Positions 22,301 through 43,540 of a stretch of 64,000 nt of DNA are shown here, piece after piece. The notes beneath the pieces were generated by a model. It was not told the origin of the DNA. It saw only the letters and a program-made list of their open reading frames with translations, and did no database searches. The position numbers were made by a program, and so were the translations under genes. Within the stretch, counting starts at the first letter, position 1, and each line of letters begins with the position of its first letter. This DNA comes from Convolutriloba macropyga (lineage: Eukaryota), in the NCBI RefSeq assembly GCF_964194025.1, contig NC_134482.1:18786001-18850000 (forward strand). Direction: 5' to 3'.

Positions 22301-25300
22301 GAGTCATTTCTGGCGAATTTTTTCTTATTAAAAATAAAACATTTTATTCAAAAAATTTTCTGAATGTAAGCCATGAATAGAACGAAGAACAAACTTGAGC
22401 AGCTCATAAATATGCAGTTCATACCCGGTTAGAATCTTATGCTTGACAAATATATCTTCAGAATGATCAGAGCGCCTACGAAAATAAATAAATTTAATAT
22501 TTTTTTTCTGAAGTAGATATATTTTCAAACTTGACGCATTTGAGCGACCGTAAACTAATACACCATATTGAACTACTGCATTTATGTTACTTTTATAATA
22601 TCTTATAAGTAATTTCCGCGGTACATAATGTCTAATCTAGTCATATTTTTCGAAGCGAACTGAAACTCCACGCCAAATTAGAACACGGTTTCCAAAAAAA
22701 CTAAATTCGGTCAATTTATCTCTTTTTCTGTTTCAATCCTGATCCGCATCAAGCGCGTGTAAGGTGGCTATTTTCTGGCAATCTACCGGCTATGTTTTAA
22801 GTTTATTTTATTTAGAATCATTTTTTGATAAACTTATTAAACAGCCTTTCATTGATTCATCTTGTGTGGAAAACTTTTCTTGGGAGGGTTTTGAATACAA
22901 TACGCTGAATGTAAATGAGTTATCACATCTTCAAGAGCTCGCCTGCTAAGGCCTGCTTACTTCTGGCCAATTCCCAGGCTCAAGATCTGTACAAAATCCT
23001 GCACTATGAGTAAGAAGTCGAGTGGAAGTTCCACATTATTCGGAAACACGCGAAGAGAGTTTCGTATTAGACGAAAGCCCTCAACAAATAGAAAATTTTG
23101 CAACAATTTTAAAAGAAAAAAATTTAAATGAAAAGCACAGCGAAGCAACCAACAAAAAGGCAACACTAGCGTTAGAAAGTTGTATTCGTCTGGGCCAAGT
23201 CCCGGTAGTCGGTGATTGTTTCTCTAGCAATTAAATTTGAGGTATTTTTTTTATTTCCTCACAGTCTTTCAGTATCAATAGGAGTAGGTGAAAAAATTAA
23301 TCAGCTTATCTTATTCCGCGGGGTCCTTCAAGATATCTAGGAATAGGATAAATAAGCTTCTTGTCTATTAAATTGCGCCGCAACATTCCGAAATGTCACA
23401 AAACGAAAAAAGCAGTACTGCAAAGTAACGCTGCCACCGACAAACAAATTACGAGCGTATCATGTAATACGACTGAAAAATAAAAAAATATTGTCATGGG
23501 AGCCGTTGAGTGATCCACTGGATAGAATAAGTCAGTTTGCATTTAATTTAGAAAATGCACCAAATAATATTGCAACCGTCCAAGCTGAAATCAAAAGCCT
23601 CAGAGCACACAGTGACGATGAACAAAATGTATCTGTACAAAAACAAGCTTGCTACGCTGAAGCCGTTAAAAGTACGGTCAAGTCAAACGGAACCATGGGT
23701 AAAAGAATCCCCTGTGTTCGAGAGCTTTCAGAGGGTAGTACCAATACAAGATTGGAACACATAAATATGGTCATCGATTATCATGAAATACAGGAAGTTA
23801 AACTAACCAGGGTATTAATGCTTGGCAAAGTAGATCGATCCAAAACAACACCATATATAATTGTCATCAACTTGGAAAATTCCTTTAGAAATACTCACTT
23901 TCAAAGAAGCGTATCAAACTTGACTATAAACCGGAAAACCAATTAATTTTTAGTTCAGAGTTTTAATCTTGAACGTTGCTATGTCAACAAACGATGCCCT
24001 ATTACGTCGGCAGCTGATTGAAACTGTTTTTAAACCCCAACTTTTTTGTATCAGAAATTTTGGAGTTAAATACGGGAAAACAACAGCTGGTTTATCGGAC
24101 GACACGGGATCGTCAATTTACTAATTGAAGTTACAATTAAGGTTCTAACGTTGTTAAATCTGAGATGCCGTACAATATTTGCGATTGCTCTGCCGACAAA
24201 GAATTGACATTATTTGAATCGCAGAAACGTGACTCACTCCCAAAATCTTCATTGTCACTCTTTTTCCTTGCCTATCAAGACTAGAGAAATTATCGAAATT
24301 CTGCAGTCATGAAAAGCAAACATGGAGGGGTGCTCAATGCAGTAGAAATGCTCTGAAACGCGAACTGCTCATTTAAAAAATGTGACGCCAGTTTTCCTGC
24401 TTCTAAAGACGAATAAACGGCTCTATCTTGATTGGTTTCTCCTATAACACGACTGAAGTTTTTATCGTTGGACAGAGAGCAAGATGCTTACGGTTCTTTT
24501 GGATCGTGAACAACTGAAAGCAACAAATATTTCATCTGTTATAATTACAGGTGCTATGAATTTTGCGAGGTCAGATTTGAATGTCAGCTAATGATTATGA
24601 AAATACCATCCATGAGTTTGACTTTAACTACACAATTGTTCTCACACTCAATTGGTTGTTTTTTTTACAATACGGAACTAATAACTCACTCCTTCATCGA
24701 CTCGTTAGTTGAAGATTACCAAATTAACTGAAAAAATCCGATCACCTTCCCTCATGCTAACGTCATTTTTGAGTGCCTTGTTCCATATGTTGCCACTGAC
24801 ATATATCGCCTCCAAAAAAGCAGATTAGGAAGCTTTTCAGTGGTATGTTTGGTGATAACTATGCCTTTCAACCCCAACCTCTTTGACAACCTAAATTTCT
24901 TGGCTCGATGAAAAATAAAACAGAAGTTTCCAAAAATAAAGAAAGAAAGAAAGAAATTATTTCTCACGAGTACAAAATATAAATCTATTAAATATAATTT
25001 ATTTATGAAGAGACTCGGAGGGGACAGACAACCGGACTATGTGTCCTCAAAATCCTGCCATTCGTAGTTGAACTTACTTGTGTAATAGTTGCTCAATAGT
25101 AAAAGAGAAAAAAAATGAGAAATTTAAATTTTTTTCGAATTTTTTTTCATGAGTTTTCTGTTCTTTTAATGGAAAATCAACCAAGAGCTTAACCATAGAC
25201 GACTATTAACAGCTACGGTTGTAGACGAGCCTTAATTGAGTTTACAAGAATTTTTTTTTGAAAGTTCAGAATTTTTCAATTTGCAACAGAATCGCAAATT

Positions 25301-28300
25301 TTTTTTAAATGATAGCCATATCTCCTGAAATATTGGTCCTAGAGGGGTCATTCTTTTTCACCAGAAAGCCAACTATTTTTGGGTACTCCTGTAGCATGCA
25401 GGCAAGGGGTATGGATTTTTTGGGTACCTATAAGGAAAAATTATATGACCAATTCGTCATTATGGAGAATATAGAAATCTTTCAATTTATGATAAAAATT
25501 ACTCAACTCTTTTGAATTTTGGTTTTCAGCATTATCGAATAGGTTTTGTTTGGCGAGGCAGTTGAACAGCTTTCTAGCACGGTACTTTACTGATAGTCTT
25601 TCAATTTTTTTCTTACAAATCGGTTCATGAAGGACATTCAGGGAGTCATTTCTGGCGAATTTTTTCTTATTAAAAATAAAACATTTTATTCAAAAAATTT
25701 TCTGAATGTAAGCCATGAATAGAACGAAGAACAAACTTGAGCAGCTCATAAATATGCAGTTCATACCCGGTTAGAATCTTATGCTTGACAAATATATCTT
25801 CAGAATGATCAGAGCGCCTACGAAAATAAATAAATTTAATATTTTTTTTCTGAAGTAGATATATTTTTTTCAAACTTGACGCATTTGAGCGACCGTAAAC
25901 TAATACACCATATTGAACTATTGCATTTATGTTACTTTTATAATATCTTATAAGTAATTTCCGCGGTACATAATGTCTAATCTAGTCATATTTTTCGAAG
26001 CGAACTGAAACTCCACGCCAAATTAGAACACGGTTTCCAAAAAAACTAAATTCGGTCAATTTATCTCTTTTTCTGTTTCAATCCTGATCCGCATCAAGCG
26101 CGTGTAAGGTGGCTATTTTCTGGCAATCTACCGGCTATGTTTTAAGTTTATTTTATTTAGAATCATTTTTTGATAAACTTATTAAACAGCCTTTCATTGA
26201 TTCATCTTGTGTGGAAAACTTTTCTTGGGAGGGTTTTGAATACAATACGCTGAATGTAAATGAGTTATCACATCTTCAAGAGCTCGCCTGCTAAGGCCTG
26301 CTTACTTCTGGCCAATTCCCAGGCTCAAGATCTGTACAAAATCCTGCACTATGAGTAAGAAGTCGAGTGGAAGTTCCACATTATTCGGAAACACGCGAAG
26401 AGAGTTTCGTATTAGACGAAAGCCCTCAACAAATAGAAAATTTTGCAACAATTTTAAAAGAAAAAAATTTAAATGAAAAGCACAGCGAAGCAACCAACAA
26501 AAAGGCAACACTAGCGTTAGAAAGTTGTATTCGTCTGGGCCAAGTCCCGGTAGTCGGTGATTGTTTCTCTAGCAATTAAATTTGAGGTATTTTTTTTATT
26601 TCCTCACAGTCTTTCAGTATCAATAGGAGTAGGTGAAAAAATTAATCAGCTTATCTTATTCCGCGGGGTCCTTCAAGATATCTAGGAATAGGATAAATAA
26701 GCTTCTTGTCTATTAAATTGCGCCGCAACATTCCGAAATGTCACAAAACGAAAAAAGCAGTACTGCAAAGTAACGCTGCCACCGACAAACAAATTACGAG
26801 CGTATCATGTAATACGACTGAAAAATAAAAAAATATTGTCATGGGAGCCGTTGAGTGATCCACTGGATAGAATAAGTCAGTTTGCATTTAATTTAGAAAA
26901 TGCACCAAATAATATTGCAACCGTCCAAGCTGAAATCAAAAGCCTCAGAGCACACAGTGACGATGAACAAAATGTATCTGTACAAAAACAAGCTTGCTAC
27001 GCTGAAGCCGTTAAAACTACGGTCAAGTCAAACGGAACCATGGGTAAAAGAATCCCCTGTGTTCGAGAGCTTTCAGAGGGTAGTACCAATACAAGATTGG
27101 AACACATAAATATGGTCATCGATTATCATGAAATACAGGAAGTTAAACTAACCAGGGTATTAATGCTTGGCAAAGTAGATCGATCCAAAACAACACCATA
27201 TACAATGGTCATCAACTTGGAAAATTCCTTTAGAAATACTCACTTTCAAAGAAGCGTATCAAACTTGACTATAAACCGGAAAACCAGTTAATTTTAAGTT
27301 CAGAGTTTTAATCTTGAACGTTGCTATGTCAACAAACGATGCCCTATTACGTCGGCAGCTGATTGAAACTGTTTTTAAACCCCAACTTTTTTGTATCAGA
27401 AATTTTGGAGTTAAATACGGGAAAACAGCAGCTGGTTTATCGGACAACACGGGATCGTCAATTTACTAATTCAAGTTACAATTAAGGTTCTAACGTTGTT
27501 AAATCTGAGATGCCGTACAATATTTGCGATTGCTCTGCCGACAAAGAATTGACATTATCTCTTTTTCCTTGCCTATCAAGACTAGAGAAATTATCGAAAT
27601 TCTGCAGTCATGAAAAGCAAACATGGAGGGGTGCTCAATGCAGTAGAAATGCTCTGAAACGCGAACTGCTCAATTAAAAAATGTGACGCCAGGTTTCCTA
27701 CTTCTAAAAAACGGTTCTATCTTGATTGGTTTCTCCTATAACACGACTTAAGTTTCTATCGTTGGACAGAGAACAAGATGCTTACGGTTCTTTTGGATCG
27801 TGAACAACTGAAAGCAACAAATATTTCATCTGTTATAATTACAGGTGCTATGAATTTTGCGAGGGCAGATTTGAATGTCAGCTAATGATTATGAAAATAC
27901 CATCCATGAGTTTGACTTTAACTACACAATTGTTCTCAAACTCAATTGGTTGTTTTTTTTTACAATACGGAACTAATAACTCACTCCTTCATCGACTCGT
28001 TAGTTAAAGATTACCAAATTAACCAAAAAAATCTGCGATCACCTTCCTATCCATGCTAACGTCATTTTTGAGTGCCTTGTTCCATATGTCGCCACTGACA
28101 TATATCGCCTCCAAAAAAGCAGATTAGGAATCTTTTCAGTGGTATGTTTGGTGATAACTATGCCTTTCAACCCCAACCTCTTTGACAACCTAAATTTCTT
28201 GGCTCGATGAAAAATAAAACAGAAGTTTCCAAAAAAAAATAAAGAAAGAAAGAATTTATTTCTCACGAGTACAAAATATAAATCTATTAAATATAATTTA

Positions 28301-29282
28301 TTTATAAAGAGACTCGGAGGGGACAGACAACGGGACTATGTGTCCTCAAAATCCTGCCCTTCGTAGTTGAACTTACTTGTGTAATAGTTGCTCAATAGTA
28401 AAATAGAATAAAAAATGAGAAATTAAAATTTTTTTCGAATTTTTTTTCATGAGTTTTCTGTTCTTTTAATGGAAAATCAACCAAGAGCTTAACCATGGAT
28501 GACTATTAACAGCTACGGTTGTAGACGAGCCTTAATTGAGGTTACAAGAATTTTTTTTTGAAAGTTCAGAATTTTTCAATTTGCAACAGAATCGCAATTT
28601 TTTTTAAATGATAGCCATATCTCCTGAAATATTGGTCCTAGAGGGGTCATTCTTTTTCACCAGAAAGCCAACTATTTTTGGGTACTCCTGTAGCATGCAG
28701 GCAAGGTTATGGATTTTTTGGGTACCTATAAGGAAAAAATATATTTGACCAATTCGTCATTATTGAGAATATAGAAATCTTTCAATTTATGATAAAAATT
28801 ACTCAACTTTTTTGAATTTTGGTTTTCAACATTATCTAAAAGGTTTTGTTTGGCGAGGCAGTTGAACAGCTTTTTAGCACGGTACTTTACTGATAGTCTT
28901 TCAATTTTTTTCTTACAAATCGGTTCATGAAGGACATTCAGGGAGTCATTTCTGGTGAATTTTTTCTTATTAAAACAAAACATTTTATTCAAAAAATTTT
29001 CTGAATGTAAGCCATGAATAGAACGAAGAACAAACTTGAGCAGCTCATAAATATGCAGTTCATACCCGGTTAGAATCTTATGCTTGACAAATATATCTTC
29101 AGAATGATCAGAGCGCCTACGAAAATAAATAAATTTAATATTTTTTTTCTGAAGTAGATATATTTTTTTCGAACTTGACGCATTTGAGCAACCGTAAACT
29201 AATACACCATATTGAACTATTGCATTTATGTTACTTTTATAATATCTTATAAGTAATTTCCGCGGTACATAATGTCTAATCT
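19334..29282. repeat. Tandem triplication of a ~3.3-kb block (19334-22640, 22641-25985, 25986-29282)
   Basis: Identical ORFs at 19457, 22764 and 26109 (offsets 3307 and 3345). Both junctions read 'atgtctaatctagtcatattttt'. Confidence 0.95.
19457..21400 (+). mobile_element. Degenerate LINE 5' part (ORF1-like plus APE-like remnant), repeated in each triplication unit
   Basis: The 151-aa ORF at 20183-20638 has a coiled-coil stretch, 'YAEAVK' and 'RVLMLGK...PYTIVINL', like LINE ORF1. A degenerate SL-like motif lies at 19505-19537. The head sequence recurs at ~49583. Confidence 0.55.
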
Positions 29283-31575
29283 TCGAAATAATCCCACACT
29301 GTTTTCCTAGTCTCTTTTTCACATAATCTATATGAGCAAGAAAAGATAGTTTGGAATCTAATCTTAAACCAAGATACTTACATACTTGTTTAAGAGAAAC
29401 TGGACAATTATTTATAGTAAATGATGGAAAGGAAGCACTCATGTTTATATTCATTTGTACAGTTTTTTCTATGTTAAGAGATAACTTGTTTGATTCAAGC
29501 CAACAACTTATCTCTTTCAGATCTGATTCTATTTGAGTCCTATTACATCCTATTGAGGATATATTTGTGTCATCGGCAAAAAGAATTATATCAGTATGTT
29601 TGCTACACTCAGGTAAGTCATGAATATATATTTTGAACAACAAAGGTCCAAGTATTGATCCCTGTGGAACTCCACAGTTCACTTTTCTCCAATTCGATAA
29701 ATGACCATTTATTTCAACCTTTTGTTATCTGTTTGCGAGGTATGATTGAAACCACTTCAAACAATTGCCACGAATACCATATCTTTCTAATTTCCAGAGC
29801 AAAATTTGATGATCTATTGTATCGAATGCCTTTTTGAGGTCAAGGAAGAAACTTAAAACTGGCAGATCATTGCAATTTCTAATTTTTTCAATAAATTCTA
29901 CGAGGGCATCAATTGTACTTTGTTTAAGTCGAAAGCCAAATTGTTTGCATGAGAATAGCAAATGCTTTTCAAAAAATGGTATACTCTGTTGTACATAACT
30001 CGCTCAAAAATTTTGCTCCAGATACTCAACAAAGATATAGGTCGATAATTGTTTTCATCAGTTTTATCACCCTCTTTATGAAGTGGAATAACTTTAGCTT
30101 CAGCGAGAATCTTTGGAAACACACCTTCCCTAAATAACATGTTAATTAGTTCACAGAGAAATGGAGCGATAATATCCGAACTGATCTTTATCAAGATGTT
30201 ACTCAAATTATCTAGACCAGATTATGATTTACTATCAAGTTCATTCATGATGCTTAGGATTTCCTCATCGGAAGTTTTATATAAGAACATGGATTTATTA
30301 TTACACGTGATTGATCTCAATGGTGCATCTGGTATTTTCGAGGCAATCTTCTTACTAATATCTGCAAAATAGTCATTAAAAGAGTTAGCAATCTCATCAT
30401 TTGTCACGTTTAAACTAGTACTTGATTTGAGAAATGGTACATTTTTACTCACTTGATTTCTACCGGAAAGATCCTTAAGTAATTTATATGTTTGTCTTGA
30501 GTCTCCTATGCAAGATTCGAAACGATTCCCGTAAAAATCTGTTTTGGCAATTTTGACTGAATTTTCAAACTTGGTACGTAATCTCTCGAAGTTATTTAAA
30601 TGACTGATGTTTCTTGTGCTTTTCCATTTACGATGAGCCTTGTTTTTATATGTTCTTAGATTTTTAATCTCATTGGACACCCATTTTGGATTCTTATATG
30701 ACTCATTATTGAACGTTCTGAAAGGAGCGAATTCATCGGTTATCTGAAGGAAAAACTTTTGAAATTGATTAAAAGCTGCATCAGCATTAACCGCATTCAG
30801 TATTGTTGTCTTATAGGCATGCATAAAATTTTTCAATTCCGATTTATATCGACATATCTCTCTTACATTTTTTAGGAAAGACGTATCACGGTATTTGAAT
30901 GTTGGACTAACATCGCAACATTTTCGCCATTTAATTAAGACTGGATAATGATCTGAGAAACTTTGATGATCAAGTACAAGGCCTTCGGGTGATGTCATAT
31001 TTTGGTGGACTATATGATCTATGCAAGTTTTGGATGAACTTGTAACTCTGATTGGGGCGGGTTCAAATAAATCAAATCCAGTTGAAACTATTGTGTTTTT
31101 GTAATTTTTTACTAGTTGATTTTCTTTGAAAATATCGAGGTTCAAATCACCACACATTATAAATGGAACTTTTGTTGATGAAAAGTTTTCCATTGATATA
31201 TCCATTTTCTCAATGAATTCGGTTTTGTTGTTCCTAGGCGGATTATATATAACTAGTACTCTAAACATGTTATCACCCTTACATACATCAGCCATTAGTG
31301 CTTCATCCAAATTAGTACTTATTTCTTTCATCAAGGTGTAATCATTTTTCACTTGAATCATTACATCACCACCTTTAGAGATACGGGTTTTAGCTATTAA
31401 TTGATTATAGCCATGAACTAAGTGACATTTCGGATCATCATTTTCTGTTAACCAAGTTTTGCTTAGACATAAAACAGAAGGAGGAGACTCAAGACCAGGT
31501 ATAAGTGCTTCCAAATTGTCCAGGTTCTTTTTTATGGAACGTACATTGATATGCATAATAGTTACTTGATTAAGT
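28726..31575 (-). pseudogene. LINE ORF2 (APE endonuclease plus reverse transcriptase), disrupted
   Basis: Consecutive ORF pieces 30222-31643, 29898-30206, 29725-29961 and 28726-29682 together give the canonical domain order. Confidence 0.9.
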
Positions 31576-32596
31576 TCCTTTTTTGGCATTCCAAAACTTA
31601 GTATTTTTATCAGTTGCATTTTTTCCTGACTCAGTATCAACATTATCAGTAACTTTTTCCTTGGTAACTTCCTTCAAAGCCAGCACTAGCGCGGGAACAA
31701 GATTTTTCACAATATCATTTACCAAGTTGGGATGGTCATAAGGCGTTTCATCTTTCTCCATTGATGGGGATAGCTGCATTCTTTTTCGTTTCACACTTTG
31801 AGTAACAGTGCTCATGGGTTTTCGGGTCAAATTAGGCATTTGCATGGGCGTATTGATACATTTACCAATTTCAAATACCGGTTTGGGTGGTGTAGACTTC
31901 TTAGAAAGACCCGGGGCAACAAAATCACGGAGTTCATTAGTTGATTTAACTTGAGCAGCATCAGCATTGGGCAGATTCTGGTTGTAGGCATAGACATCTT
32001 GTTTCCTAGTAAAAGTTAGAAGGCCCATTTGTTTTGCTTCAGTTCTACTTCCCGGTCCCGCGGAGCTAGATATTCTTCAATTTGTACGGGTCGTCCTAAT
32101 GAATTGCTCATGCCCTTGAGCCAGGTTCTTCTTCGCCATATTAAATCACGGTCCTGGTGATATATAAACTTCACGATTATAGGGGCGTTCGGGCTTTGGT
32201 TTAATGGGTGACACGCTGCTAGGCTGGTGGGGTTGAAATTTAGTTGCAAAATCTGTTTGAAGAGAAACATAATGCTTGATAGTGCGTCGCCTTTGCATTC
32301 GACTTTGTAGAAACTTAGGCACAGTTTTCTCGAGTACTTTTCAAGTTCAACAATTCGCTCATCCCGTTTGTGTATTGCATTTAAGTTGATGTTCATCATA
32401 TCTTTCATGTGTCCTTGACTCTGTTTAAGCCTCCTCAGTTCACTGTCCTGCTTTATTATCATTCGCATCATTTTTCGCATAAGATCTTTCATCGTCGAAC
32501 CCACATCATCGTCATCATCTAGTTTTTCAACTTCGTCCGCAATAGAGTCAACGTCAACTTAAAGCATTCTTCAAGATCATCAAATTCCATGTTCAT
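31570..32596 (-). pseudogene. LINE ORF1 (coiled coil plus L1-type RRM), frameshifted
   Basis: Reads 'ERIVELEKYSRKLCLSF...ACHPL...PIIVKFI..QDRD'. The ATG at 32596 is 3 nt after SL-like copy B. Confidence 0.8.
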
Positions 32597-32599
32597 TCT

Positions 32600-32631
32600 C
32601 TATTTTAATAAGTTTATCACAACAATTGGGC
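32600..32631 (-). other. SL-like motif copy B (GCCCAATTGTTGTGATAAACTTATTAAAATAG)
   Basis: Internal to the LINE and directly before the ORF1 ATG. Confidence 0.75.
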
Positions 32632-32781
32632 TAATAATCCAATTACTGACAACGGGGAACCTCAAGGTAGCCTTTTGCGATCAGCACTGTGAGGGGGGAA
32701 TGTAAGAGACCTCAATCTTAACCTCTTCCAGCGGAACCTCAAGGTAGCCTAATCTGGAAGAACAAAAAGACTAAGAGTAAC

Positions 32782-33430
32782 TTACTTTACCAGGTACTGC
32801 AGATACACCGACAGTCCTTTGCTGTACTTCTTGTATAACACCTTCTCCTTGATGAGATTGCGCAGATTGTTTAGACCGTCTTCGTTTAAGTGAATGAGGT
32901 CCTTTTTGCTGAAGTACCGTGCACCTGTTAAGTATTGTTTGACGGACCTGTAGTTCCACTCTACTTTACAGGGCTTTTTGGGTTTGCGTTCAGCTACGTA
33001 CTGTAAGAGGTCGTTGACGGCTTTCGTTCTTGTTTTGTTTTCGTCACGTTCTGGCACTCCCAGCACGAAGACAGAGGGTGCTCGGTTGCAAAGGAAGTTT
33101 GCGAGCTCAACAATATCGTCTGCTGCTTTTCTGGCAGAAGTAAGGGAGAGTTCAGTGAAATTGTAAAGGTCATCACCTCCAATGAAATGAATTATGATGT
33201 CAAACAGACCAGCTGGGGGGACGTAGTCGTAGGCGTGTCTGACAGGCACCTGGTAGGGAGACAATATTGAGGTTGCCTGCGTCCAGGTAGCGTGCCTGAG
33301 AGTGCAAGAAGGAAGTACTTCGTCGATGATGTTCTGGTGACGTGATATCTGGACTTCTTCCTCTCTGACATTCAGGACCTTTTCTCTAAAATCCTCCAAC
33401 GGGAGGCCTTCCACAAAAGGTCGCAAGCAT
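32782..33430 (-). pseudogene. Stand-alone SGNH/GDSL esterase-like ORF of the LINE
   Basis: Contains 'FIGGDDL' (block III) and 'DLIHLNEDG' (block V DxxH). An alternative frame near 33300 gives 'YFLLA-SQARYL...IVSLPG' (blocks I/II). Confidence 0.7.
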
Positions 33431-33437
33431 TACAAAT

Positions 33438-33468
33438 CTATTTAATAAGTTTTTCACAACAATTAGGC
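33438..33468 (-). other. SL-like motif copy C (GCCTAATTGTTGTGAAAAACTTATTAAATAG)
   Basis: 30/31 match to the consensus. An ATG follows 7 nt downstream, and two partial copies lie upstream at 33469-33501. Confidence 0.8.
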
Positions 33469-33739
33469 TTTCACAACAAATCATCATTATCACAACAAAT
33501 CACGGTGCAACGTGCAGCACTTCATCGTGGATCTCATCACTTCTATAAAGCGTCAAACATAATAAAGTGCCTTAAAAAGAGATCAACAGGAAGGTTATTT
33601 TTGCATTGTTCAAAAAAGTGGAAAAGACTTGAAACGAAATTCAAGGATCCAGTGATATGGAAGTTTGCAGTTATTGAAAATTGATGTTTCTGTAAAATTC
33701 GAAAATCCACCCCTACAAAAATCATTGACCTGAAATCGT

Positions 33740-35140
33740 TTGGTACCAAAATGTTGAGATCGAATTTATTTGTGTAGTTTTTTTGTAAATGTTGCTTATT
33801 GCTAATCCTTACCGCGAAATGCTGTTCTTAAGTGAAGAAAAAGAATGAAAAGTTAATGCTAGGAAGAATGAAAGCTTGATTTTTGTTGCTGTGTATTTAT
33901 CTATCTTTTGTTCTCCCTTGAAGTAAATTTGTTTTTTCTTTCTCTATTTAAAAACAGAATTTCGCGGTAAGGAATAATAAACACCCATTTCATACAAAAA
34001 AACTTCACAAGTAAACTCGAGCTCAACGTGGAGGGATGTTGACATTTTGGTTGCAAATGATTTCGAGTGATTGCGCAGGCTAGAGTTTCAATCATTTAAG
34101 TTTTTTGTATGTTTTATACAGAACCAGCAAATACCACTCAACAAATACTAAAACTACCAACCACATCAGTTCCTATCGTTAAGTTTTATTTGAATTCAGC
34201 ATTAATTGTTTTGGTTGATTTTGATTTCGTCAAATGGTTGGTTTTTACTGTCAGTTGTATAATTTAGTTCCTTATCCAAGTTTTCGTTTCCTTGTTTAAA
34301 GATGCAGTATTGTTTTATGTTAATTGTTGCTTATCAAGTACACCACAGAAGATCTATTAATCTCTGAGAACATCTCGTCACAGTTTGTTTGTTGATTAAC
34401 TGTCCGCCAATCAGAAAATGCTAAATTTCACTGCTGAATTTTTTTGGCTGGTTTTGCGATTACAAATGTTCCACGTGGTTGGTACTTGAGGTCAATTTTG
34501 GTATGATGGGCAATGTTTATGAGCGAGCTCTAGCTTAGGCAGACACAAATTTCATTTCGATGCCCATTTTTTAAAAGTGAACGATTTTGACTGATGTGGT
34601 TGGGAGTTTTATTATTTGTTGAGTTATGTGTTTGTTTTGTATAAAAGTTGCAACCTGCATTCAAAAAACTTTTAAATGTTGGGAACTCTAGCCTGCGCAA
34701 TGACTCGGAATTATTTGGACCCAGAATGTCAAAACGCCCAACACGCTGAGTTTGAGTTTATTTAAGTAGTTCTTTTTTGTAAATCGTGTTTTTTACTATT
34801 CTTAACCGCGGAATTCTAGTTTTAAGAAATGAAAGAATTTGTTTCTAGGAAGAACGAAAAAAAAGAGCGAAAGAGTCTTCGTTCTTCCTTTTTTTACTTA
34901 AAAACAGAATTTCGCGGTAAGGATTAATGATAGGCTCCCATTTCATACAAAAACAACTACACAACAAACTCGCGCCGAGCGGGGAGGGGTGTTAACATTT
35001 TGGTTCCAAATAATTTCAAGTCATTGCGCTGGCTAGAGTTTAAAACATTTGAGATTTTTTTAATGTAGGTTGAAACTTTTATACAAAACCAGCAAATATT
35101 ACTCAACAGATACTAAAACTCCTAAACACATCAGTTCCAA
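33740..35140. repeat. Alternating-orientation (fold-back) repeat cluster
   Basis: 'aaaaacagaatttcgcggtaagga...gcgc.ggctagagtt' occurs at ~33950 and ~34900. Inverted copies occur at ~34600-34825 and, partially, at ~33780-33830. Confidence 0.75.
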
Positions 35141-35149
35141 TCGTCCAGT

Positions 35150-35408
35150 TTTATGTAAAAAGATGTGGATTAAACGAACGAAAACAAACTTAAGTAGTTC
35201 GCAAAGATGTAATTCGAAGACATTGAGCACATTTCGTTTTTGGAAAGAGTCAAACCAAAGCTTCTTCCTGAAGTGGTGTTCCGTTTGCATTTGCAGTATG
35301 CGAAGCAGCGTTGAGGAAGAGAAACAGTCGTAAATCAAGACAGTTTGATAGATTTGCTATTAGAGTTATAATTGAGAATGAATGCCTTTTGTTACACAAT
35401 GACGTAGA

Positions 35409-35409
<1 letters not shown>
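35150..35409 (-). mobile_element. 3' RT fragment of the older Crack-like LINE interrupted by the L2 element
   Basis: 'LRHCVTK' and 'LNVFELHLCELLKFV' parallel 'IRHYVPR' and 'YELHIYELLKFV' of the 28726-29682 RT. Confidence 0.7.

Positions 35410-35483
<74 letters not shown>
35410..35483. repeat. (TCA)n microsatellite, about 25 units; the (GAT)n 3' tail of the L2 element
   Basis: Perfect trinucleotide run about 230 nt downstream of the RT stop on the minus strand. Confidence 0.9.
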
Positions 35484-36840
35484 GTTTGTTTATACACTTC
35501 TTTCTTCAGACTCAGAAGTGTACTGTTTCGTATTAGGAGTAAAAATGTTCACGGAAAAGAAATGTTTTTAAAGCTGATTTGAACTGATCAACTCCATTCT
35601 GTTCTCTGATCCACTTGGGGAGTTTGTTCCACAAGACAGCACCTTGGTAATCAAAAGCATCTCGTCCAAGTTTTGAAGACCTTTTGAGTACAACCAATAC
35701 CACTCCATTTCAGGAAGTTTTTGCTCGTTTTTCAAACACGTCTAAATAGTCTGGAATCAGATCTTTGTGAAAAAGGCTTTTGTAGACAAGCAGAAGTATT
35801 TTAAAACGAATTCTCATATAAATCGGCAGCCAGTGATGGTCATGAAGGTGAATTGATATAGAGCACCAAGGATGTAGCCGGTAATCAAATCTACATGCCC
35901 GATTTTGGACCTTTTGGAGAATGGACAATTTTTTCATGCCAAGTCCGTTAAGGATCGAATTGCAGTAATCTAGGCGACTCATGATTAAGCATCTAACCAG
36001 CAGTATGCGTGTTTCAAAATCAACAAAATTTCGAAGAGAGTGGAGTATTCGGAGGTAGTGAAAGCAGTTTTTGGCAACAGTTTTTACTTGCTTCTCCATG
36101 TCAAGGTGTTTTTCAATTGTAACGCCAAGGCATTTCAGGGAGTTAGATAGCTTTACTTCAACGTTTCTGACTTTTATGGAGCTGATACTTGGCGCATTCT
36201 TTACGCTTGAAATGAGAATGGCTTCTGTTTTACTTTCGTTAACCTGTAGGCCAGCATTCGCAAACCAGTATAAAACTTTTTTCATTACTTCCTGGTTTAC
36301 TTGACTTAACATTTCTTCAATTTTCGTAAGTTCATTCTTCAAAAATTCTTTTTCGGATTTCTTATCGGATGAGCAATCGTTACAGCACCACAGAAGGGTG
36401 CCTGTTTTGACAAGAGTTACATCTAGTGAGGGGTAGGCACAGGATGAATGAACTTTTTTCGAGCATACATGGCACTCCATTGAGTTTTCCGTAATTTTAC
36501 TCGAGCAAAGAACGCATTGCTCAGTGATAAAGAGAGAACAAGTGTTCTGACTCGCCTCGTCAGTTGGTGGCGTGCAGTCGGTCGAGAGGGCGTCAGTTTC
36601 CATCGTAGAGTCCACACAGACAACCACTATCACGATCGCACTCGAATGTTCTTTCCGGACCAAGGTTGTTGAGTTCTTTGCTGTATTTTTTAAAAAGGAG
36701 CTTTTCTTTGATGAGGTTTTTAATGTTATTCACTCCTTCTGAGGTCAGATGAACGAGGGCCTTTTCCTTGTGGTGATGGTTCTTCAGGTGACGAAATTGA
36801 ATGTACTTAGATAGACTGAGGAACTTGGTAGATAGACGGA

Positions 36841-39287
36841 GGTAATCAAATCTACATGCCCGATTTTGGACCTTTTGGAGAATGGACAATTTTTTCATGC
36901 CAAGTCCGTTAAGGATCGAATTGCAGTAATCTAGGCGACTCATGATTAAGCATCTAACCAGCAGTATGCGTGTTTCAAAATCAACAAAATTTCGAAGAGA
37001 GTGGAGTATTCGGAGGTAGTGAAAGCAGTTTTTGGCAACAGTTTTTACTTGCTTCTCCATGTCAAGGTGTTTTTCAATTGTAACGCCAAGGCATTTCAGG
37101 GAGTTAGATAGCTTTACTTCAACGTTTCTGACTTTTATGGAGCTGATACTTGGCGCATTCTTTACGCTTGAAATGAGAATGGCTTCTGTTTTACTTTCGT
37201 TAACCTGTAGGCCAGCATTCGCAAACCAGTATAAAACTTTTTGAATGGTAAGTTCAACGGAATTTGCATTGAAGATGTTTTGAAGAGCATTCAAAGTAGA
37301 GGATGGTGTCATCAGCATATAGTTGATAATTTACTTTAATTTCTTTGAGTAGGTCACCCAACGGTGTAAGATAGACACTGAAAAGCATAGGCCCAAGAAT
37401 GGAACCCTGAGGTAAACCAGAATCGAGAAGTGCAGGTTTTGAGACTGAATCGTTGACTAAAACAAGTTGTGTTCTTCCCAAGAGATAAGACTGAAGCCAC
37501 TTTTTGGCTGTATACCTTATGCCAAAACGATCTTCACAAATATGTAAGAGAACTTTGTGGTTCAGTGTATCAAAAGCCGCCTGCAAGTCGAGAGCCACTG
37601 TAAAAACAAACGAATGTTTATCAAGCATCTTTCGTGTGTTCATGAAAGTATGCAATAAGGCAGTTTCTGTGGAGAAAGTTTCACGGTAGGCGGATTGCTG
37701 ATCATCTAGGGGTGAGTTCACATTAAAATAACTTATAATTTGCTCAAATGCAAGACATTCAAGGACTTTGGATAAAAAGATTAGGTTACTAATAGGTCTA
37801 TAATTTGATAGAATTTCAGGATCAAGACTTTCATTTTTCAGCTTGGGAATCACTATCGCAATCTTGAAATCATCTGGAAAAACTCCTTGTTCAAATGACG
37901 TATTGAAAAGTAAGATTATTGTAGGCATAAAAGATGCTGAGAAATCTTTAAACACTGTAGATGGAATTACGTCGTGGTAGCTATTCGATGCTGATGTTTT
38001 CGCTAGGGCCCTTTGTAAGCTTTCCTCACTGACAGCTGCAAATTTTGCAAACCGAGGCGAGATTTTATTGCAGTGTACAGTAAACTTGGAAAATTTCGAG
38101 GTGATTTTGCAGACTTTTTTCCGGAAAAAGATTACAAATCTTTCAGCTAGGGCGCTTGCGTTCGTAAAACTCGGGGGCTTTAACTCACAGCCTTTCCCTA
38201 GGAGTGAATTCAAGATCTGGAACTTTTTTCTGTCTGGAGCTTTTGAAATATCACAAAGATTTTTGTCAAAGAATAATTTCTTTTTTCTATAGTAGAGATT
38301 TTGGTACTCTATAGCCTTGCTGAGGTCACTCTGAGCTGCTTTTGTCCGTTGTTTTCGGAATTCGCGCTCTTTTTTCCCTTTGTTCTTTTTTGATGCTATG
38401 AGATCGTCGTCGAAAAATGGGCATTTCTTGTGAAAACCTTTTCGTTGAATCGGTGGTGCATAGAAATCAACGTAACTACGAATGATGTCTAGGAACCATT
38501 TACATAAAGTATTCGGGTCGTCTGAAGTTCTAAGCGTGATTGCTGATGATATTTCAATTTCCTCGGCAACATTTTTCCAAGGCACTCATTTTAAATTGCG
38601 ATATGTGAAAGGGCGATTTCTGTGTTTTGGTTTATCAGAAACCGGCATGCCAAACTCAATCAAAAAATGATCACTGAAATCCAGTTGCTGAACAATCATT
38701 GGACAATTTTCGTAGTGTGTGGGCAAAAAGACTTGATCCAAAGTGTTACCATGTTTATGCGTGGGTTCGTGAACACGTGCTGACAACTCTAATGTGCTAA
38801 ATAGTTCCAAGATCAAATTTGCATATTTATTTTGGGTATTAAAATGGAGATTGAAATCGCCTAGGCAGATGACTTCATCGTAATCCAACGCCAAGGGGAC
38901 AACTTTTTCAGAGAATTCATCGTAGAACTTCAGGGATGAGGTACCAGGTATATGGTAAACAACTAGGAAGAGATAGGGCTTGGAGTGGAGCTTCAATTCA
39001 ATGGCTAACATCTCAAACGTGTCTGTTAGAGCAAAATCAATTATTTTGGCGTGAAAATTCACTTTATATATGAAACAGAGGCCGCCCCCTTCTCGTGAGA
39101 CCCTGGCATGTGAGTAATGAGAGTAGTTGTCTGAATGTTCGTAGCACTGCTCAAGAAGAAATTCCTCGTCCGAACGTTGCCACGTTTCACATAAAATAAA
39201 AACATCTGGATTGGATAGCATTATAAGTGAACTGATTTTCGAGCACTTGTTTCTCACTGATCGCGAATTCAAGAGGCCAATTTTCAT
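36841..39287 (-). pseudogene. L2 ORF2 (APE plus RT) with one in-frame TGA (38586-38588) and one frameshift (~37250-37320)
   Basis: ORFs 38586-39287 and 37254-38585 are in the same frame. The reading continues in 36593-37318. Confidence 0.88.
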
Positions 39288-39314
39288 TGAGTCCTTGAGC
39301 CGCTCAGGGAGTAG

Positions 39315-40217
39315 TCAGCTTCTGGGAAGATTTTTGAGCCACTGCCAGGCTCTTTCGTTCAGTCTGAACCTTCCAATGAGAATCCCTTGAGGCCAATTTT
39401 CAGCTTTTTCAATTTCTTCAATATCTTTTTCTTGAAAAACCGCATGGAAAGATTTATATGGTGATTCTTGTTTTGAGACTTCTCTGATATGTAGCAATTC
39501 TACACCAATTCCGGTACAGTATTGTTTGATATCGTCGTCGGTTGTTTCTCGTTGAGCCATACCTATGTACACATGCCTCCTGGACAGATTGGGTTTGCGA
39601 GGGGGGATAGCCTTGAAATTTGAGTTTGCAGATCCATCTCCGACTGCAATGATAGGGGCTGGCTTCACTGTTCTCTGTTTCGTTGGAGCTGCTTTTGGAT
39701 CGGCCGCTTCATTCGTTGAATGGAAAGTTTTCCGTTTCTTTGACTTCTGAGAGGAATCAGACATCATGCTGGATTGAGAGGGCTCACGAGATCGTGAGTC
39801 AAACCTCTTTGACTTCAGGATCTCAGCAAAAGTTAGATGAGATGCCGTGGCCGCTGTAGGCGCTGAGTCGGAAGATTCGACACGCGAGCGAAACTTCATT
39901 ACTTCCTGGTTTACTTGACTTAACATTTCTTCAATTTTCGTAAGTTCATTCTTCAAAAATTCTTTTTCGGATTTCTTATCGGATGAGCAATCGTTACAGC
40001 ACCACAGAAGGGTGCCTGTTTTGACAAGAGTTACATCTAGTGAGGGGTAGGCACAGGATGAATGAACTTTTTTCGAGCATACATGGCACTCCATTGAGTT
40101 TTCCGTAATTTTACTCGAGCAAAGAACGCATTGCTCAGTGATAAAGAGAGAACAAGTGTTCTGACTCGCCTCGTCAGTTGGTGGCGTGCAGTCGGTCGAG
40201 AGGGCGTCAGTTTCCAT
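39315..40217 (-). CDS. L2 ORF1 with N-terminal PHD finger, coiled coil and C-terminal RRM-like domain (intact)
   Basis: Contains CVLC..CHVC..HSSC..WCCNDC (C4HC3) and 'RHVYIG...SFHAVF...ENWPQGILIGRF'. First ATG (METDAL) is at 40217. Confidence 0.8.
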   Translation of the reverse strand: METDALSTDCTPPTDEASQNTCSLFITEQCVLCSSKITENSMECHVCSKKVHSSCAYPSLDVTLVKTGTLLWCCNDCSSDKKSEKEFLKNELTKIEEMLSQVNQEVMKFRSRVESSDSAPTAATASHLTFAEILKSKRFDSRSREPSQSSMMSDSSQKSKKRKTFHSTNEAADPKAAPTKQRTVKPAPIIAVGDGSANSNFKAIPPRKPNLSRRHVYIGMAQRETTDDDIKQYCTGIGVELLHIREVSKQESPYKSFHAVFQEKDIEEIEKAENWPQGILIGRFRLNERAWQWLKNLPRS

Positions 40218-40819
40218 CGTAGAGTCCACACAGACAACCACTATCACGATCGCACTCGAATGTTCTTTCCGGACCAAGGTTGTTGAGTTCTTTGCTGTAT
40301 TTTTTAAAAAGGAGCTTTTCTTTGATGAGGTTTTTAATGTTATTCACTCCTTCTGAGGTCAGATGAACGAGGGCCTTTTCCTTGTGGTGATGGTTCTTCA
40401 GGTGACGAAATTGAATGTACTTAGATAGACTGAGGAACTTCCACTTCGACTCTTTGGCTAACTTGGTAAGGATCTTATTGATTTCGTCCGCTCTCTAACA
40501 GTGAGTCCCTCTCTGAGGAATTCCCAGGATATAAACTTTTTTATAGCGTTCGGCAGTGAAATCGCCCAGTTTCTTGTTGTTTGGCAATCAGAGTTGCTGG
40601 TGTGGCCGACGGGATATTGTTATCGAAAGCGTTGTTCCCACCGATGAAAATAATGAATGTTTCGCACCGCTCAGTGCTCGGGAGATAGTCGTATGAGTGC
40701 TTGACCTGACCTCCGGGAAGCGACAAAACTGAGAAATTTCCAGTGAACAGGTCTTTAACTTGCGAGTCAGATATCATAAAAACTTTCGTTTGAGCTCTTC
40801 TAAAGATGTGATATCTCAT
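40207..40819 (-). pseudogene. Stand-alone SGNH esterase-like ORF of the L2 element (frameshifted near 40545-40580)
   Basis: Contains 'FMISDSQ', 'LSLPGG', 'FIGGNN', 'LVHLTSEG' and 'IKEKLLFKKYSK'. It aligns by eye with 32782-33430. Confidence 0.72.
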
Positions 40820-41090
40820 CTAAAACTCTGGTGAAACCTGAAGGTATCTGTGGAGTTTAGATGAGATGGTGATGAATGGAGATTACTCCGAAACTCCGGT
40901 GAAACCTGAAGGTATCTGTGGAGTGTGAAAGGAGCACTGTTAATTGCTTTCAGATATAGAACAATAACAGCTTGCAGATAAAGAATTGCTTGCTTCCAGA
41001 TATAGAACAATAACAGCTTGCAGTTTGTGCACTTTTAATCATCAATCAAGGGCATCCACGGCTACCCTGATAATCAAAGCAGATCTGAAA

Positions 41091-41121
41091 CTTTTTAATA
41101 AATTTATCACAACAATTAGGC
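41091..41121 (-). other. SL-like motif copy D (GCCTAATTGTTGTGATAAATTTATTAAAAAG)
   Basis: 29/31 match to the consensus. It lies about 50 nt inside the 5' end of the L2 element and is followed by TTTCAG. Confidence 0.75.
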
Positions 41122-41172
41122 TAAACCTAACCCCACAAAGCTCACGTGTTACCATGCAACTCTGCTCTGCGC

Positions 41173-43540
41173 TCTATTTGATAAGAAACTTCTCAATCCA
41201 TTAAATCGCCTTTACACGGATACTCTAGCAACAGTTTTCTTTGTATTTCATGATCGAGGAAAGCAAATGCTTTTTAAAACAAAAAATTAGAAGAGTTAAT
41301 TTTTTGATGTCTTGGTCTCTCTGCCAGCTCGGCCAATGAGTCATCCAATTTGGAGCCAGGTTTGCGGATGGGTATTGTCTTTGCCCGTTGTAATTCACTT
41401 GGGAGAAAACCTTTTTTTAAACCCATATTCATTAATCTTGTGAGACGCGATATAAGCTCAGGGGCAATAAATTTCAATAATATATTGCTTAGATGACTGT
41501 CTCCAGATGAGAACTTATTATCCGAGTCATTGAATATTTCCTGAACTTCTGGTTCATTCACGGGGAAGAAAAACATGAAAAATGAAAAACTCTCAGGAAA
41601 ATGAAGGACATTAGGGAGAGATACTTTAAGGTTTTTCACTTACAGAGCTAAAAAAATCGATCAGTATTTCAACAATTGTCAAAGGTGACGGTAAATCAGA
41701 GCACGTTACGTATTGTGAGAAAGCTGGCAGAGTATGGTCTTTAACGGATTGACCTTTTAAATCATTTAATGACTTAAATATTTGCCTTGAGTCTCCAATA
41801 CGAGATCGAAACCTCTTTTAATATTGATTTTTTGAGGTCTCCACCTCTTTGGCAAAATTTTCCCGCAGCTTTTTGCATTTTTTTTCATATTGTCAACATT
41901 AGGGTCCATCTTCGATTGTCTGTGCAATTTATTACGTTTGGAGCACAAACTTTTTCGCCTATTGGAATACCATTTAGCTCTTATTTCTGCACTTTGCCAA
42001 TGGAGAGAACTGGTATGTTACCTCAGAGACAACTTTATGGAAATAAGCAAATGAATCATTTTTGTGATTATTGTCAACTAGAAAATTCTGTGTTAACAGT
42101 AGTTCAGGTTGTAGAAAACCAATATCTCGAAAAATACAATTGCTCGTATATTAATGCCACAGGAAATGAAGATTCGGAACGGATCGGTTAAATTCTGATT
42201 TTCAGGTACTCCTGCTAAACTTTTGTATATTTTTTTGATAAAAAGTTTGTATTTTTTTGATAAAAAGTGAGCAAGGCAGGTGGAACATTCATCAATTACT
42301 CTGGTTGTTTTTTTCGACCAACATGTCAAATTCATTTGATTCGATGATGTTTATATACTGCTTCGTGAGATAAATTTTAACCAACATGTCTTAAAATCTC
42401 CAGACTGCTGTTGGTTTTGAACTTGGTATCTTTTCATGACACATCAGAATCCTCCAGGAATGCCATCTTTTTAGAGCTTGGAGGATTATAGCAGGAAAGT
42501 GAAGATAGAAGTCAGGACAGTGAAGATAGAATAATTTTTTTTCTGAAATTTCTGTTTCTTCAATCAAATTGACATCTCTATTTATTTTGATAGCACTACA
42601 TGTCCTAGAGTCACGAGCTTTAGAGGAAAATGATTATATTCTTTAATTATTTTTTAGCCAAGTTTCACTTAAGCAAATTATAGACGGTGGGGGCTAAAGG
42701 CTGTATACTAGTGCTACAAACTTAATTGTTTTTCTTCAGCGATCGCACATTCAAATGCTGTTTATAAAGGGTACTAAAATTGCGCAGTGCATTAACTGGA
42801 GATTTTTTTAAAGTTTCAAGATTATGAATGCTTTGTTAGTTTCTGGTTTCTTTTGCTGATCTTTGTTAATCAATATTTCACATTGGCGCTTCAATGTCTC
42901 AAGGATGTTTCTGCCAGTTTTTTTCTACCTCATCATGCTCATGTTTGCATTATGTCGACAAAATCTTGCAATGATTGGGCTTCCAGCCGGATCCCTCGAT
43001 GGCTGACGCTGGGAAATAGATAAACCTTCAATATTAAATGTTTTTCATAGCTTTCCAAATATCTACATTGGTTTTCAATGTGCAATCCGCGAACTTCTGC
43101 TCACTGTTCTCTGGAATTCGTGTGATTCGGTTGTTGTCGCGCCGGTTATAAGTTTCTAGTTCCTCAGCGTCGATGTTTTGAGATTGCAAAGCCTTTCTTG
43201 GAAACATGAATCTGCCGTAAATACATCCTGCACTTCATCCTTCACAGCTGCGATGGATTCTTCAATCATGTAGTTGGTAAATTTTTGGCAATATTTTTTG
43301 TATGGCATCCTCTATCCTTTGCATCGGCTCATTTTCGTCTTCTAAAATAGGATTTCAAGGCTCTTTTCTTATCAAGTGGTTTAACTGATGTAGGCGGAGT
43401 TTGGCCTTGATAACGGAGAACTGGTCGGGCAATCGAGTGTTCCAGACCAAAGGTATCATTAGTGTCGGTCTTTGTGCTAGCATCAATGTCTGCATTTTCA
43501 TCTCTGAAACTATTTAATTAGTTTATCACAACAATTAGGC
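41173..43540 (-). mobile_element. Older, degraded Crack-like LINE (ORF1, APE, RT N-terminus)
   Basis: ORF 41274-41639 reads 'NKFSSGDSHLSNILLKFIAPE...AKTIPIRKPGSKLD', with 'IGDSRQIF' near 41790 and APE remnants at 42100-42800. It starts with SL-like copy E. Confidence 0.8.
43510..43540 (-). other. SL-like motif copy E (GCCTAATTGTTGTGATAAACTAATTAAATAG)
   Basis: 30/31 match to the consensus, followed by TTTCAGAG-ATG. Confidence 0.8.

Follow-up and report, generated by a model that had tools for sequence, protein, structure and literature searches.

The 64,000-nt stretch of the Convolutriloba macropyga genome analysed here (NC_134482.1, positions 18,786,001 to 18,850,000; hereafter the window) holds, on its minus strand, decayed copies of two long interspersed nuclear elements (LINEs), A and B, each of which starts with a spliced leader (SL) and a small open reading frame (ORF) for a predicted SGNH/GDSL esterase. 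We consider it highly probable that this esterase of ~205 aa is a stand-alone first cistron and part of a portable 5' module that was captured by the family of element A. The portable unit would comprise the leader, a short untranslated region (UTR), the esterase ORF and about 144 nt behind it, and would have been joined, from the lineage of a LINE family with a PHD-type ORF1 (family X), upstream of a leader-capped two-ORF LINE RNA, leaving the old leader trapped between esterase and ORF1. A sequence-only reading of the window had suggested a mobile module on the basis of A and B. Judged from their esterase sequences, only 34% identical, A and B are uninformative on exchange; the suggestion is instead borne out by the comparison of A with X, which share the module and have unrelated bodies, and by relatives of the A body that have no esterase.

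Families A and X share a 5' module and differ in body

Element A is made up of the following parts (window positions).

28237..33469, minus strand: LINE element A, full length, decayed (leader, esterase ORF, spacer, fossil leader, ORF1, APE-RT ORF2, (TTCT)n tail)
33438..33469, minus strand: spliced leader at the 5' end of A (31 nt plus the preceding A; one mismatch in the 24-nt core)
32787..33371, minus strand: remnant of the A esterase ORF (ATG at 33371; ancestral stop at 32787-32789; deletions near 33303, 33245 and 32816)
32643..32786, minus strand: non-coding tail of the shared 5' module (144 nt; in families A and X; ends ...GTCAGTAA)
32633..32642, minus strand: filler between module and fossil leader (10 nt; in family A only, from a six-copy alignment)
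32600..32632, minus strand: fossil spliced leader inside A (one substitution and one extra A relative to the leader)
31570..32596, minus strand: A ORF1, coiled-coil type, frameshifted (ATG at 32596, 3 nt past the fossil leader)
28726..31643, minus strand: A ORF2, in pieces, APE endonuclease and reverse transcriptase (Pfam Exo_endo_phos; reverse transcriptase by profile)

The element has a 66-nt UTR between leader and esterase ORF and matches copies on C16 (L048) and C4 (L053) at ~91% identity across about 5.1-5.3 kb, with flanks that differ from copy to copy. Both changes in the fossil leader are common to the A-family copies checked. Aligned with family X (L049, L050 and L052), the leader, UTR, esterase ORF and 144-nt tail show 81-95% nucleotide identity, and the similarity then stops abruptly after ...GTCAGTAA (window ~32643), with nothing alignable downstream. 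Identity of A to the X copies is 0.67-0.97 up to ~32643 and background (0.18-0.4) from there on. At the protein level the esterases of A and X are 72-90% identical and their reverse transcriptases (RTs) 24-32%, while the X RT is 42-46% identical to that of family D. The ORF1 of X is PHD-type as read from its sequence, with weak zinc-finger matches in Pfam.

The proposed comparison of esterase and RT phylogenies puts the two trees in conflict, and approximately unbiased (AU) tests reject congruence. The census behind these trees covers about a dozen elements, with broken genes compared as separate pieces aligned to profiles. In the maximum-likelihood (ML) tree of the esterase, A and X interleave in one clade (100/100), sister to D/E/I, whereas in the ML tree of the RT, X groups with D (100/99) and A stands apart. 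The AU test rejects an A+X clade for the RT (p = 3.9e-4) and, for the esterase, a clade of X with D/E/I to the exclusion of A (p = 6e-6). The A-type junction is present at exactly 4 genome loci and the X-type junction at 4 more and at L052; as each type occurs at at least four loci with different flanks, the junctions are not an assembly artefact.

Spliced leaders head the elements

The leader, described as SL-like in the earlier reading, turned out to be a genuine acoel spliced leader: its 31 nt are identical to the SL of Symsagittifera roscoffensis (PMC9911081), and the genome contains arrays of the leader followed by GT. Leader+GT occurs >2000 times, most of the listed sites lying in tandem arrays on C9 with a spacing of ~1.1-1.8 kb; in the one array unit inspected (L056), the leader is followed by a GTAAGT donor and by a hairpin ~40 nt downstream.

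C9:23.14-23.78 Mb and 62.06-62.13 Mb: SL-RNA-gene-like tandem arrays

At the 5' ends of A, B and several more elements, the leader starts exactly where the flanks of the copies diverge. The upstream flanks of leader-headed copies are unrelated, and the leader is followed by element sequence, not by SL intron. That full-length copies start with the spliced leader indicates that trans-splicing of their RNA templates preceded copying into DNA.

Two leaders each are stacked at element 5' ends in L041 (2231-2284, minus strand) and L060 (154-207), suggesting repeated rounds of trans-splicing and retrotransposition. Two partial leader-core repeats (TTGTTGTGA...) lie directly upstream of the A leader, at window 33470-33510 (minus strand), and are possibly remnants of stacked leaders. 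Extra leader copies at window 43513-43540 and 15512-15539 (both minus strand) head other, unrelated sequences, probably as the 5' ends of more retro-copies.

Probable direction and mechanism of capture

A genome search with A ORF1 yielded eight relatives, 50-75% identical, and all eight begin with the leader; the DNA upstream of these eight ORF1s showed no esterase on that strand in any of them. In the closest relatives, L058 and L059, the terminal leader is joined to a near-identical 'AGA ATG AAC ATG GAA...' start, as behind the internal leader of A. Eight leader-headed, esterase-less relatives indicate that the A body derives from a two-ORF, leader-capped lineage in front of which the esterase module was added. 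The esterase and RT of X are both sister to those of D, which makes X look like a lineage that carried the ORF vertically, and makes X, or a lineage close to it, the apparent donor. We infer, with good support, that transfer ran from an X-like lineage to A. The relatives at L060, L061 and L064, 53-55% identical in ORF1, have the leader ~850 nt upstream of ORF1 and a conserved long 5' region; no esterase was found in that ~850-nt region.

Element A was made by the joining of a leader-capped LINE RNA (or complementary DNA, cDNA), exactly at its 5' end, to an esterase-bearing module, and the composite transposed. The joining would most likely have taken place at the RNA or cDNA level, perhaps through template switching, with an RT that had reached the 5' end of the A-progenitor RNA continuing on one that bore an esterase, or perhaps through insertion of a progenitor copy into an X copy, followed by read-through. 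Alternatively, the exchange could have occurred at the DNA level, through ectopic recombination, gene conversion or segmental rearrangement between copies. Breakpoints alone do not separate RNA from DNA events, and the X copies are 94% similar to one another in the esterase module and 83.5% in their bodies, which could reflect conversion. We nevertheless regard a DNA-level event as unlikely, though still to be reckoned with: the trapped leader shows the recipient to have been a processed RNA, already trans-spliced, or the full-length cDNA of one, joined exactly at its 5' end, and in the window's B copy the element's own 5' region has been copied again internally with 100% identity, which fits a template-switching RT and is to be expected of one.

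Several points weigh against capture by joining of RNA or cDNA from an X-like donor. Each of the two families has only about 4-5 full-length copies; X itself may not have been the donor, a third lineage being another candidate; and the joining model leaves the origin of the 10-nt filler unaccounted for. Searches with exact patterns returned no leader-capped, esterase-less retrocopies of B or X, none of the copies carrying A's own ORF1 5' region (0/4) lacks the module, and no retrocopy evidence of internal trans-splicing before ORF1 was seen; as the families are small, these negatives are weak.

Tentatively, and as possible rather than probable, we suggest a general route to cistron stacking in animals with spliced-leader trans-splicing: an RT may jump from the leader-capped 5' end of a LINE RNA onto another retroelement RNA. 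If true, whole cistrons, here an esterase, would have been placed in front of established elements and have spread across LINE clades, and even to long terminal repeat (LTR) elements, to give operon-like three-ORF retrotransposons, and the trapped leader in A would document such a capture at the sequence level for the first time.

The small ORF has the features of an SGNH/GDSL esterase

The two remnants in the window, at 32787-33371 and 40207-40819 (both minus strand), are decayed copies of one protein family. All five motifs that the sequence-only reading had described as shared by them are found on the minus strand at the places it gave, the SLPG motif of copy A lying in a neighbouring frame because of small deletions. 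Its span of 32782-33430 for the A esterase holds as to homology and fails as to the start, since the true ATG is at 33371, not 33430. The likeness far exceeds chance: searched against all six frames of the 1.18-Gb genome, the N-terminal 92 aa of the B copy retrieve an intact family-A copy on C4 at E 9.4e-17, and the intact ORFs of L002 (211 aa) and L032 (204 aa) align end-to-end over 208 residues with 34% identity (BLASTP E 3e-46).

L002 1426-2061, minus strand: intact family-A esterase ORF (211 aa)
L032 1135-1749, minus strand: intact family-B esterase ORF (204 aa)
L057: second intact family-B esterase ORF (213 aa)

Window copy A, which retains 95.2% identity to the intact ORF, has lost 2 nt at codon 23, 2 nt at codon 43 and 47 nt at codon 187; the loss at codon 23 destroys the catalytic Asp-Ser motif. 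Window copy B retains 97.4% identity to the intact ORF; it has lost 2 nt at codon 82 and is interrupted by a stop at codon 109.

The proposed SGNH identity is supported by Pfam GDSL matches, by the predicted fold and its Foldseek matches, and by the motifs. Single-sequence Pfam and PDB searches with the decayed window ORFs were empty, as was a PDB search with the intact L002 ORF; the empty searches with the decayed ORFs made intact copies and profiles necessary. Intact copies give weak but consistent Pfam GDSL matches: one ORF scores 24.2 bits for Lipase_GDSL against a cutoff of 23.6, and the remaining ORFs fall under the Pfam curated cutoffs with E-values that are still significant, E 3e-4 (best member 1.5e-8). 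Among 54 aligned members, 29 match Lipase_GDSL_2 and 15 match Lipase_GDSL. A profile search of 1.84 billion representative proteins gave 638 relatives, the best 150 of the 638 being 74-320 aa long, and a word-index protein search gave 23 unnamed ENA proteins; the homologues from both libraries fall within 74-320 aa. The AlphaFold2 (AF2) model built from the 54-member alignment has a predicted local distance difference test (pLDDT) score of 95.1 and a predicted template-modelling (pTM) score of 0.91, compared with a pLDDT of 55 from a 7-sequence alignment. Foldseek finds 54 PDB matches for it at E <= 0.001, with TM-scores of 0.55-0.62 and a flavodoxin-like alpha/beta/alpha fold. Nearly all of the functionally described proteins among the best 50 of these 54 are SGNH/GDSL-type enzymes, and the top matches, all of them SGNH hydrolases, include PAF acetylhydrolase (PAF-AH), sialate O-acetylesterase, TesA and the esterase of zebrafish ZfL2-1 ORF1 (4c1b).

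In the alignment of 14 ORFs, the block I Asp-Ser (xDSQ) is invariant in 14/14, as are the block II Gly (LPG) and block III GGN, and the Asp that follows GGN is >=90% conserved. The block V (DxxH) His is likewise >=90% conserved, with the Asp three residues before it present in most families, and the esterase ORFs have a conserved Cys-rich C-terminal tail. The ratio of nonsynonymous to synonymous substitution (dN/dS) between esterase copies is 0.34-0.56 for most pairs; between families dS is saturated and dN is 0.42-0.46.

Alternatively, the small ORF could be an inactive relic, or a non-catalytic SGNH-fold protein such as that in Oskar, with a structural or lipid-binding role. A weak Pfam OSK match would fit this, and so would family B, in which the block V Asp is replaced by Ala (as also in L024) and GGND reads GGNN, so that catalysis in this family may be weakened. 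At the same time, the Ser, Gly, Asn and His positions are retained across families that are 25-64% identical and the ORF is open in many copies, which makes loss of catalysis throughout improbable. Two further points count against the esterase reading: one pair of family-C copies has a dN/dS of 0.95, and both copies in the window itself are dead. Translation and enzymatic activity of the protein are inferred. By analogy with the ZfL2-1 ORF1 esterase (PMC3905857), the protein probably acts in lipid or membrane binding during assembly of the ribonucleoprotein (RNP).

The esterase ORF is separate from ORF1

As the earlier reading had it, the esterase is a separate ORF: intact copies of both A and B are not fused to ORF1, and no family was found to fuse the two in frame. 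The esterase ORF starts 7-24 residues before block I, ends in a stop in the intact copies of A (L002), B (L032 and L057), C (L044) and E (L025), and is followed by a separate ORF1. In family A (L002) the ORF1 ATG lies ~190 nt past the esterase stop, behind the fossil leader; the gap from stop to ORF1 is 84 nt in family C (L044) and 300 nt in family E (L025). In family B the ORF1 ATG (40215-40217) and the esterase stop (40207-40209) overlap by 11 nt in different frames, an arrangement present in L032, the window copy and L057, and the gene caller of an independent assembly called the B esterase and ORF1 as two genes. This overlap suggests termination-reinitiation coupling. In L047 a frame of 433 aa runs from part of the esterase into ORF1, but it results from frameshifts in a decayed copy and is not a feature of the family.

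It would still be conceivable that the esterase is made as an ORF1 fusion, by programmed frameshifting in B, where the overlap is short and conserved in at least three copies, or by splicing out of the spacer in A, where the esterase stop sits in a splice-donor-like GGTAAAG context. We consider this very unlikely. The B ORF1 has its own ATG within the overlap; the A spacer contains a complete leader with the ORF1 ATG 3 nt later; two candidate acceptors, checked by eye, yield stops and no fusion; families C and E have the gaps given above; and library homologues are almost all <=200 aa. A difficulty for the three-ORF organisation is the translation of ORF1 and ORF2 from behind the esterase.

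Element B and other LINE remnants in the window

Element B, 92-97% identical to L046, L047, L054 and L057, consists of the following.

35411..41122, minus strand: LINE element B (leader, 271-nt 5' UTR, esterase ORF, PHD ORF1, APE, RT, (GAT)24 tail)
41091..41122, minus strand: spliced leader at the 5' end of B
40207..40819, minus strand: remnant of the B esterase ORF (2-nt deletion near 40576; stop at codon 109)
39315..40217, minus strand: B ORF1 (300 aa; PHD finger and a C-terminal part read by eye as RRM-like)
38586-39287, minus strand: B APE (Pfam Exo_endo_phos, E 5.5e-12)
37254-38585, minus strand: B RT (Pfam RVT_1, E 2.9e-22)
35880..36826, minus strand: private rearrangement of B inside the RT (self-BLAST)

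B ORF1 matches Pfam PHD at E 8e-5 to 3e-4, and its PDB matches are PHD fingers. The rearrangement consists of two 100%-identical duplicates: 36281-36826 repeats 39895-40440 (546 nt, esterase C-terminus and ORF1 N-terminus), and 35880-36281 repeats 36841-37242 (402 nt of RT). It is missing from L046, L047, L054 and L057, and reflects either template switching within the molecule at insertion or misassembly.

Elements A and B both have microsatellite 3' tails, and their RTs, 25-30% identical, sit on separate starred branches ~2.4 substitutions per site apart. That there was no exchange at all, and that all esterase-bearing LINEs inherited the ORF vertically from a three-ORF ancestor with strong conservation accounting for the likeness of A to X, would fit the roughly equal distance of A and B in esterase (34-39%) and RT, but it is a most improbable reading and already contradicted for A, because the A-X identity runs through non-coding UTR and spacer and ends sharply, esterase dS between A and X is only 0.10-0.16 where the bodies have no nucleotide similarity, congruent trees are rejected, and the ORF is missing from all eight sampled relatives of A's body.

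The ORF1 of A has an intact 318-aa frame in L048 (6672-7625, minus strand) and gave no Pfam or PDB sequence match; its nearest ESM-Atlas feature clusters are a baculovirus FP25K-like C-terminal domain (0.92) and an L1 RNA-binding domain (RBD)-like one (0.90). This hints at kinship with L1-like type II ORF1 proteins, the L1-type label of the earlier reading being a lead drawn from these features.

An RT N-terminal fragment of a different LINE lies at window 41274-41639 (minus strand), directly upstream of the B leader, suggesting that B may have inserted beside or into an older element. Two RT C-terminal fragments at 22090-22636 and 25444-25981 (both minus strand), ~3.3 kb apart, match the identical part of the RT profile, which suggests 5'-truncated copies or a local duplication; the fragment at 25444-25981 looks A-like by eye.

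The esterase ORF in other elements

The same ORF, at 205 aa, is carried by a BEL/Pao LTR element (Pfam DUF1759, Peptidase_A17, RVT_1 and integrase). It lies 344-407 nt upstream of gag (403-407 nt in 10 of the 12 copies that have both ORFs), is 42-51% identical to the esterase of A and has the same C-terminal tail.

L009-L016 and L055: young BEL/Pao element, esterase ORF upstream of gag

In L045 (1305-4463), two copies of the esterase region precede gag-pol at a period of 2448 nt, and the ORF may therefore lie in or beside the LTR. Tandem arrays of the esterase ORF with periods of ~1.2-1.3 kb are seen in L037-L039 (C15:16.88 Mb), L025/L029 (C5:56.47 Mb) and L044; such arrays stand at the 5' side of some LINEs and resemble 5' monomer arrays.

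Comparison with known systems

Esterases of LINEs have long been puzzling, in that they replace an RNA-binding ORF1 in scattered clades, with horizontal acquisition of the ORF merely inferred. In the openly accessible literature we found no description of a LINE with three ORFs of which one is a separate esterase, and no work on retrotransposons of acoels that deals with leader-capped LINE copies, an internal fossil leader or leader-marked capture. The work on trans-splicing in S. roscoffensis (PMC9911081), in which the leader is identical, treats host genes.

The closest likeness is to the type IV ORF1p esterase of CR1/L2/RTEX LINEs (Kapitonov & Jurka 2003; ZfL2-1, PDB 4c1b, Schneider et al. 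2013, PMC3905857), likewise an SGNH esterase upstream of APE-RT and likewise scattered across LINE clades. The ZfL2-1 protein shares all four catalytic blocks with the esterase described here and resembles it in a PGA motif in block II; its Foldseek match (E 3.6e-4) has, at 20%, the highest identity among the matches listed, and similarity to it by sequence is weak (profile E 0.8-1.3). In the known LINE esterases the domain is ORF1 itself, preceded by a coiled coil, in elements that have no RNA-binding ORF1 (PMC3905857), and among the Jockey superfamily esterase ORF1s have been reported from vertebrate subgroups only (PMC4120745). The acoel esterase, in contrast, is a bare ORF of 200-215 aa with a Cys-rich tail and no coiled coil, and a separate ORF1 of coiled-coil or PHD type comes next, giving three ORFs in all. 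As an extra cistron alongside a conventional ORF1, it looks accessory and not like a substitute for RNA binding.

In bdelloid rotifers, a GDSL esterase ORF3 is shared by LTR retrotransposons and Penelope-like Athena elements (Rodriguez et al. 2017, PMC5408684). There, as here with LINEs and BEL/Pao, a separate accessory esterase ORF occurs across unrelated classes of retroelements, which was read as gene sharing. The rotifer ORF3, however, lies downstream of pol, does not cluster with LINE esterases and came with no breakpoints or joining mechanism, whereas the acoel esterase is the first cistron and its junction is preserved.

The ORF1 region of Jockey elements has been described as modular and inferred to have been exchanged between CR1 and L2, with ORF2 evolving in a tree-like manner (Metcalfe & Casane 2014, PMC4120745). 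That reticulation was inferred from phylogeny and domain patterns, whereas in the acoel case a whole extra ORF was added, recently (81-95% nucleotide identity), at a breakpoint marked by the trapped leader. One acquisition is preserved here along with the breakpoint, the apparent donor lineage, sister elements that have no esterase, and a timestamp in the form of the trapped leader, so that the capture of modules by non-LTR elements and the part played by the esterase can be tested directly in one organism.

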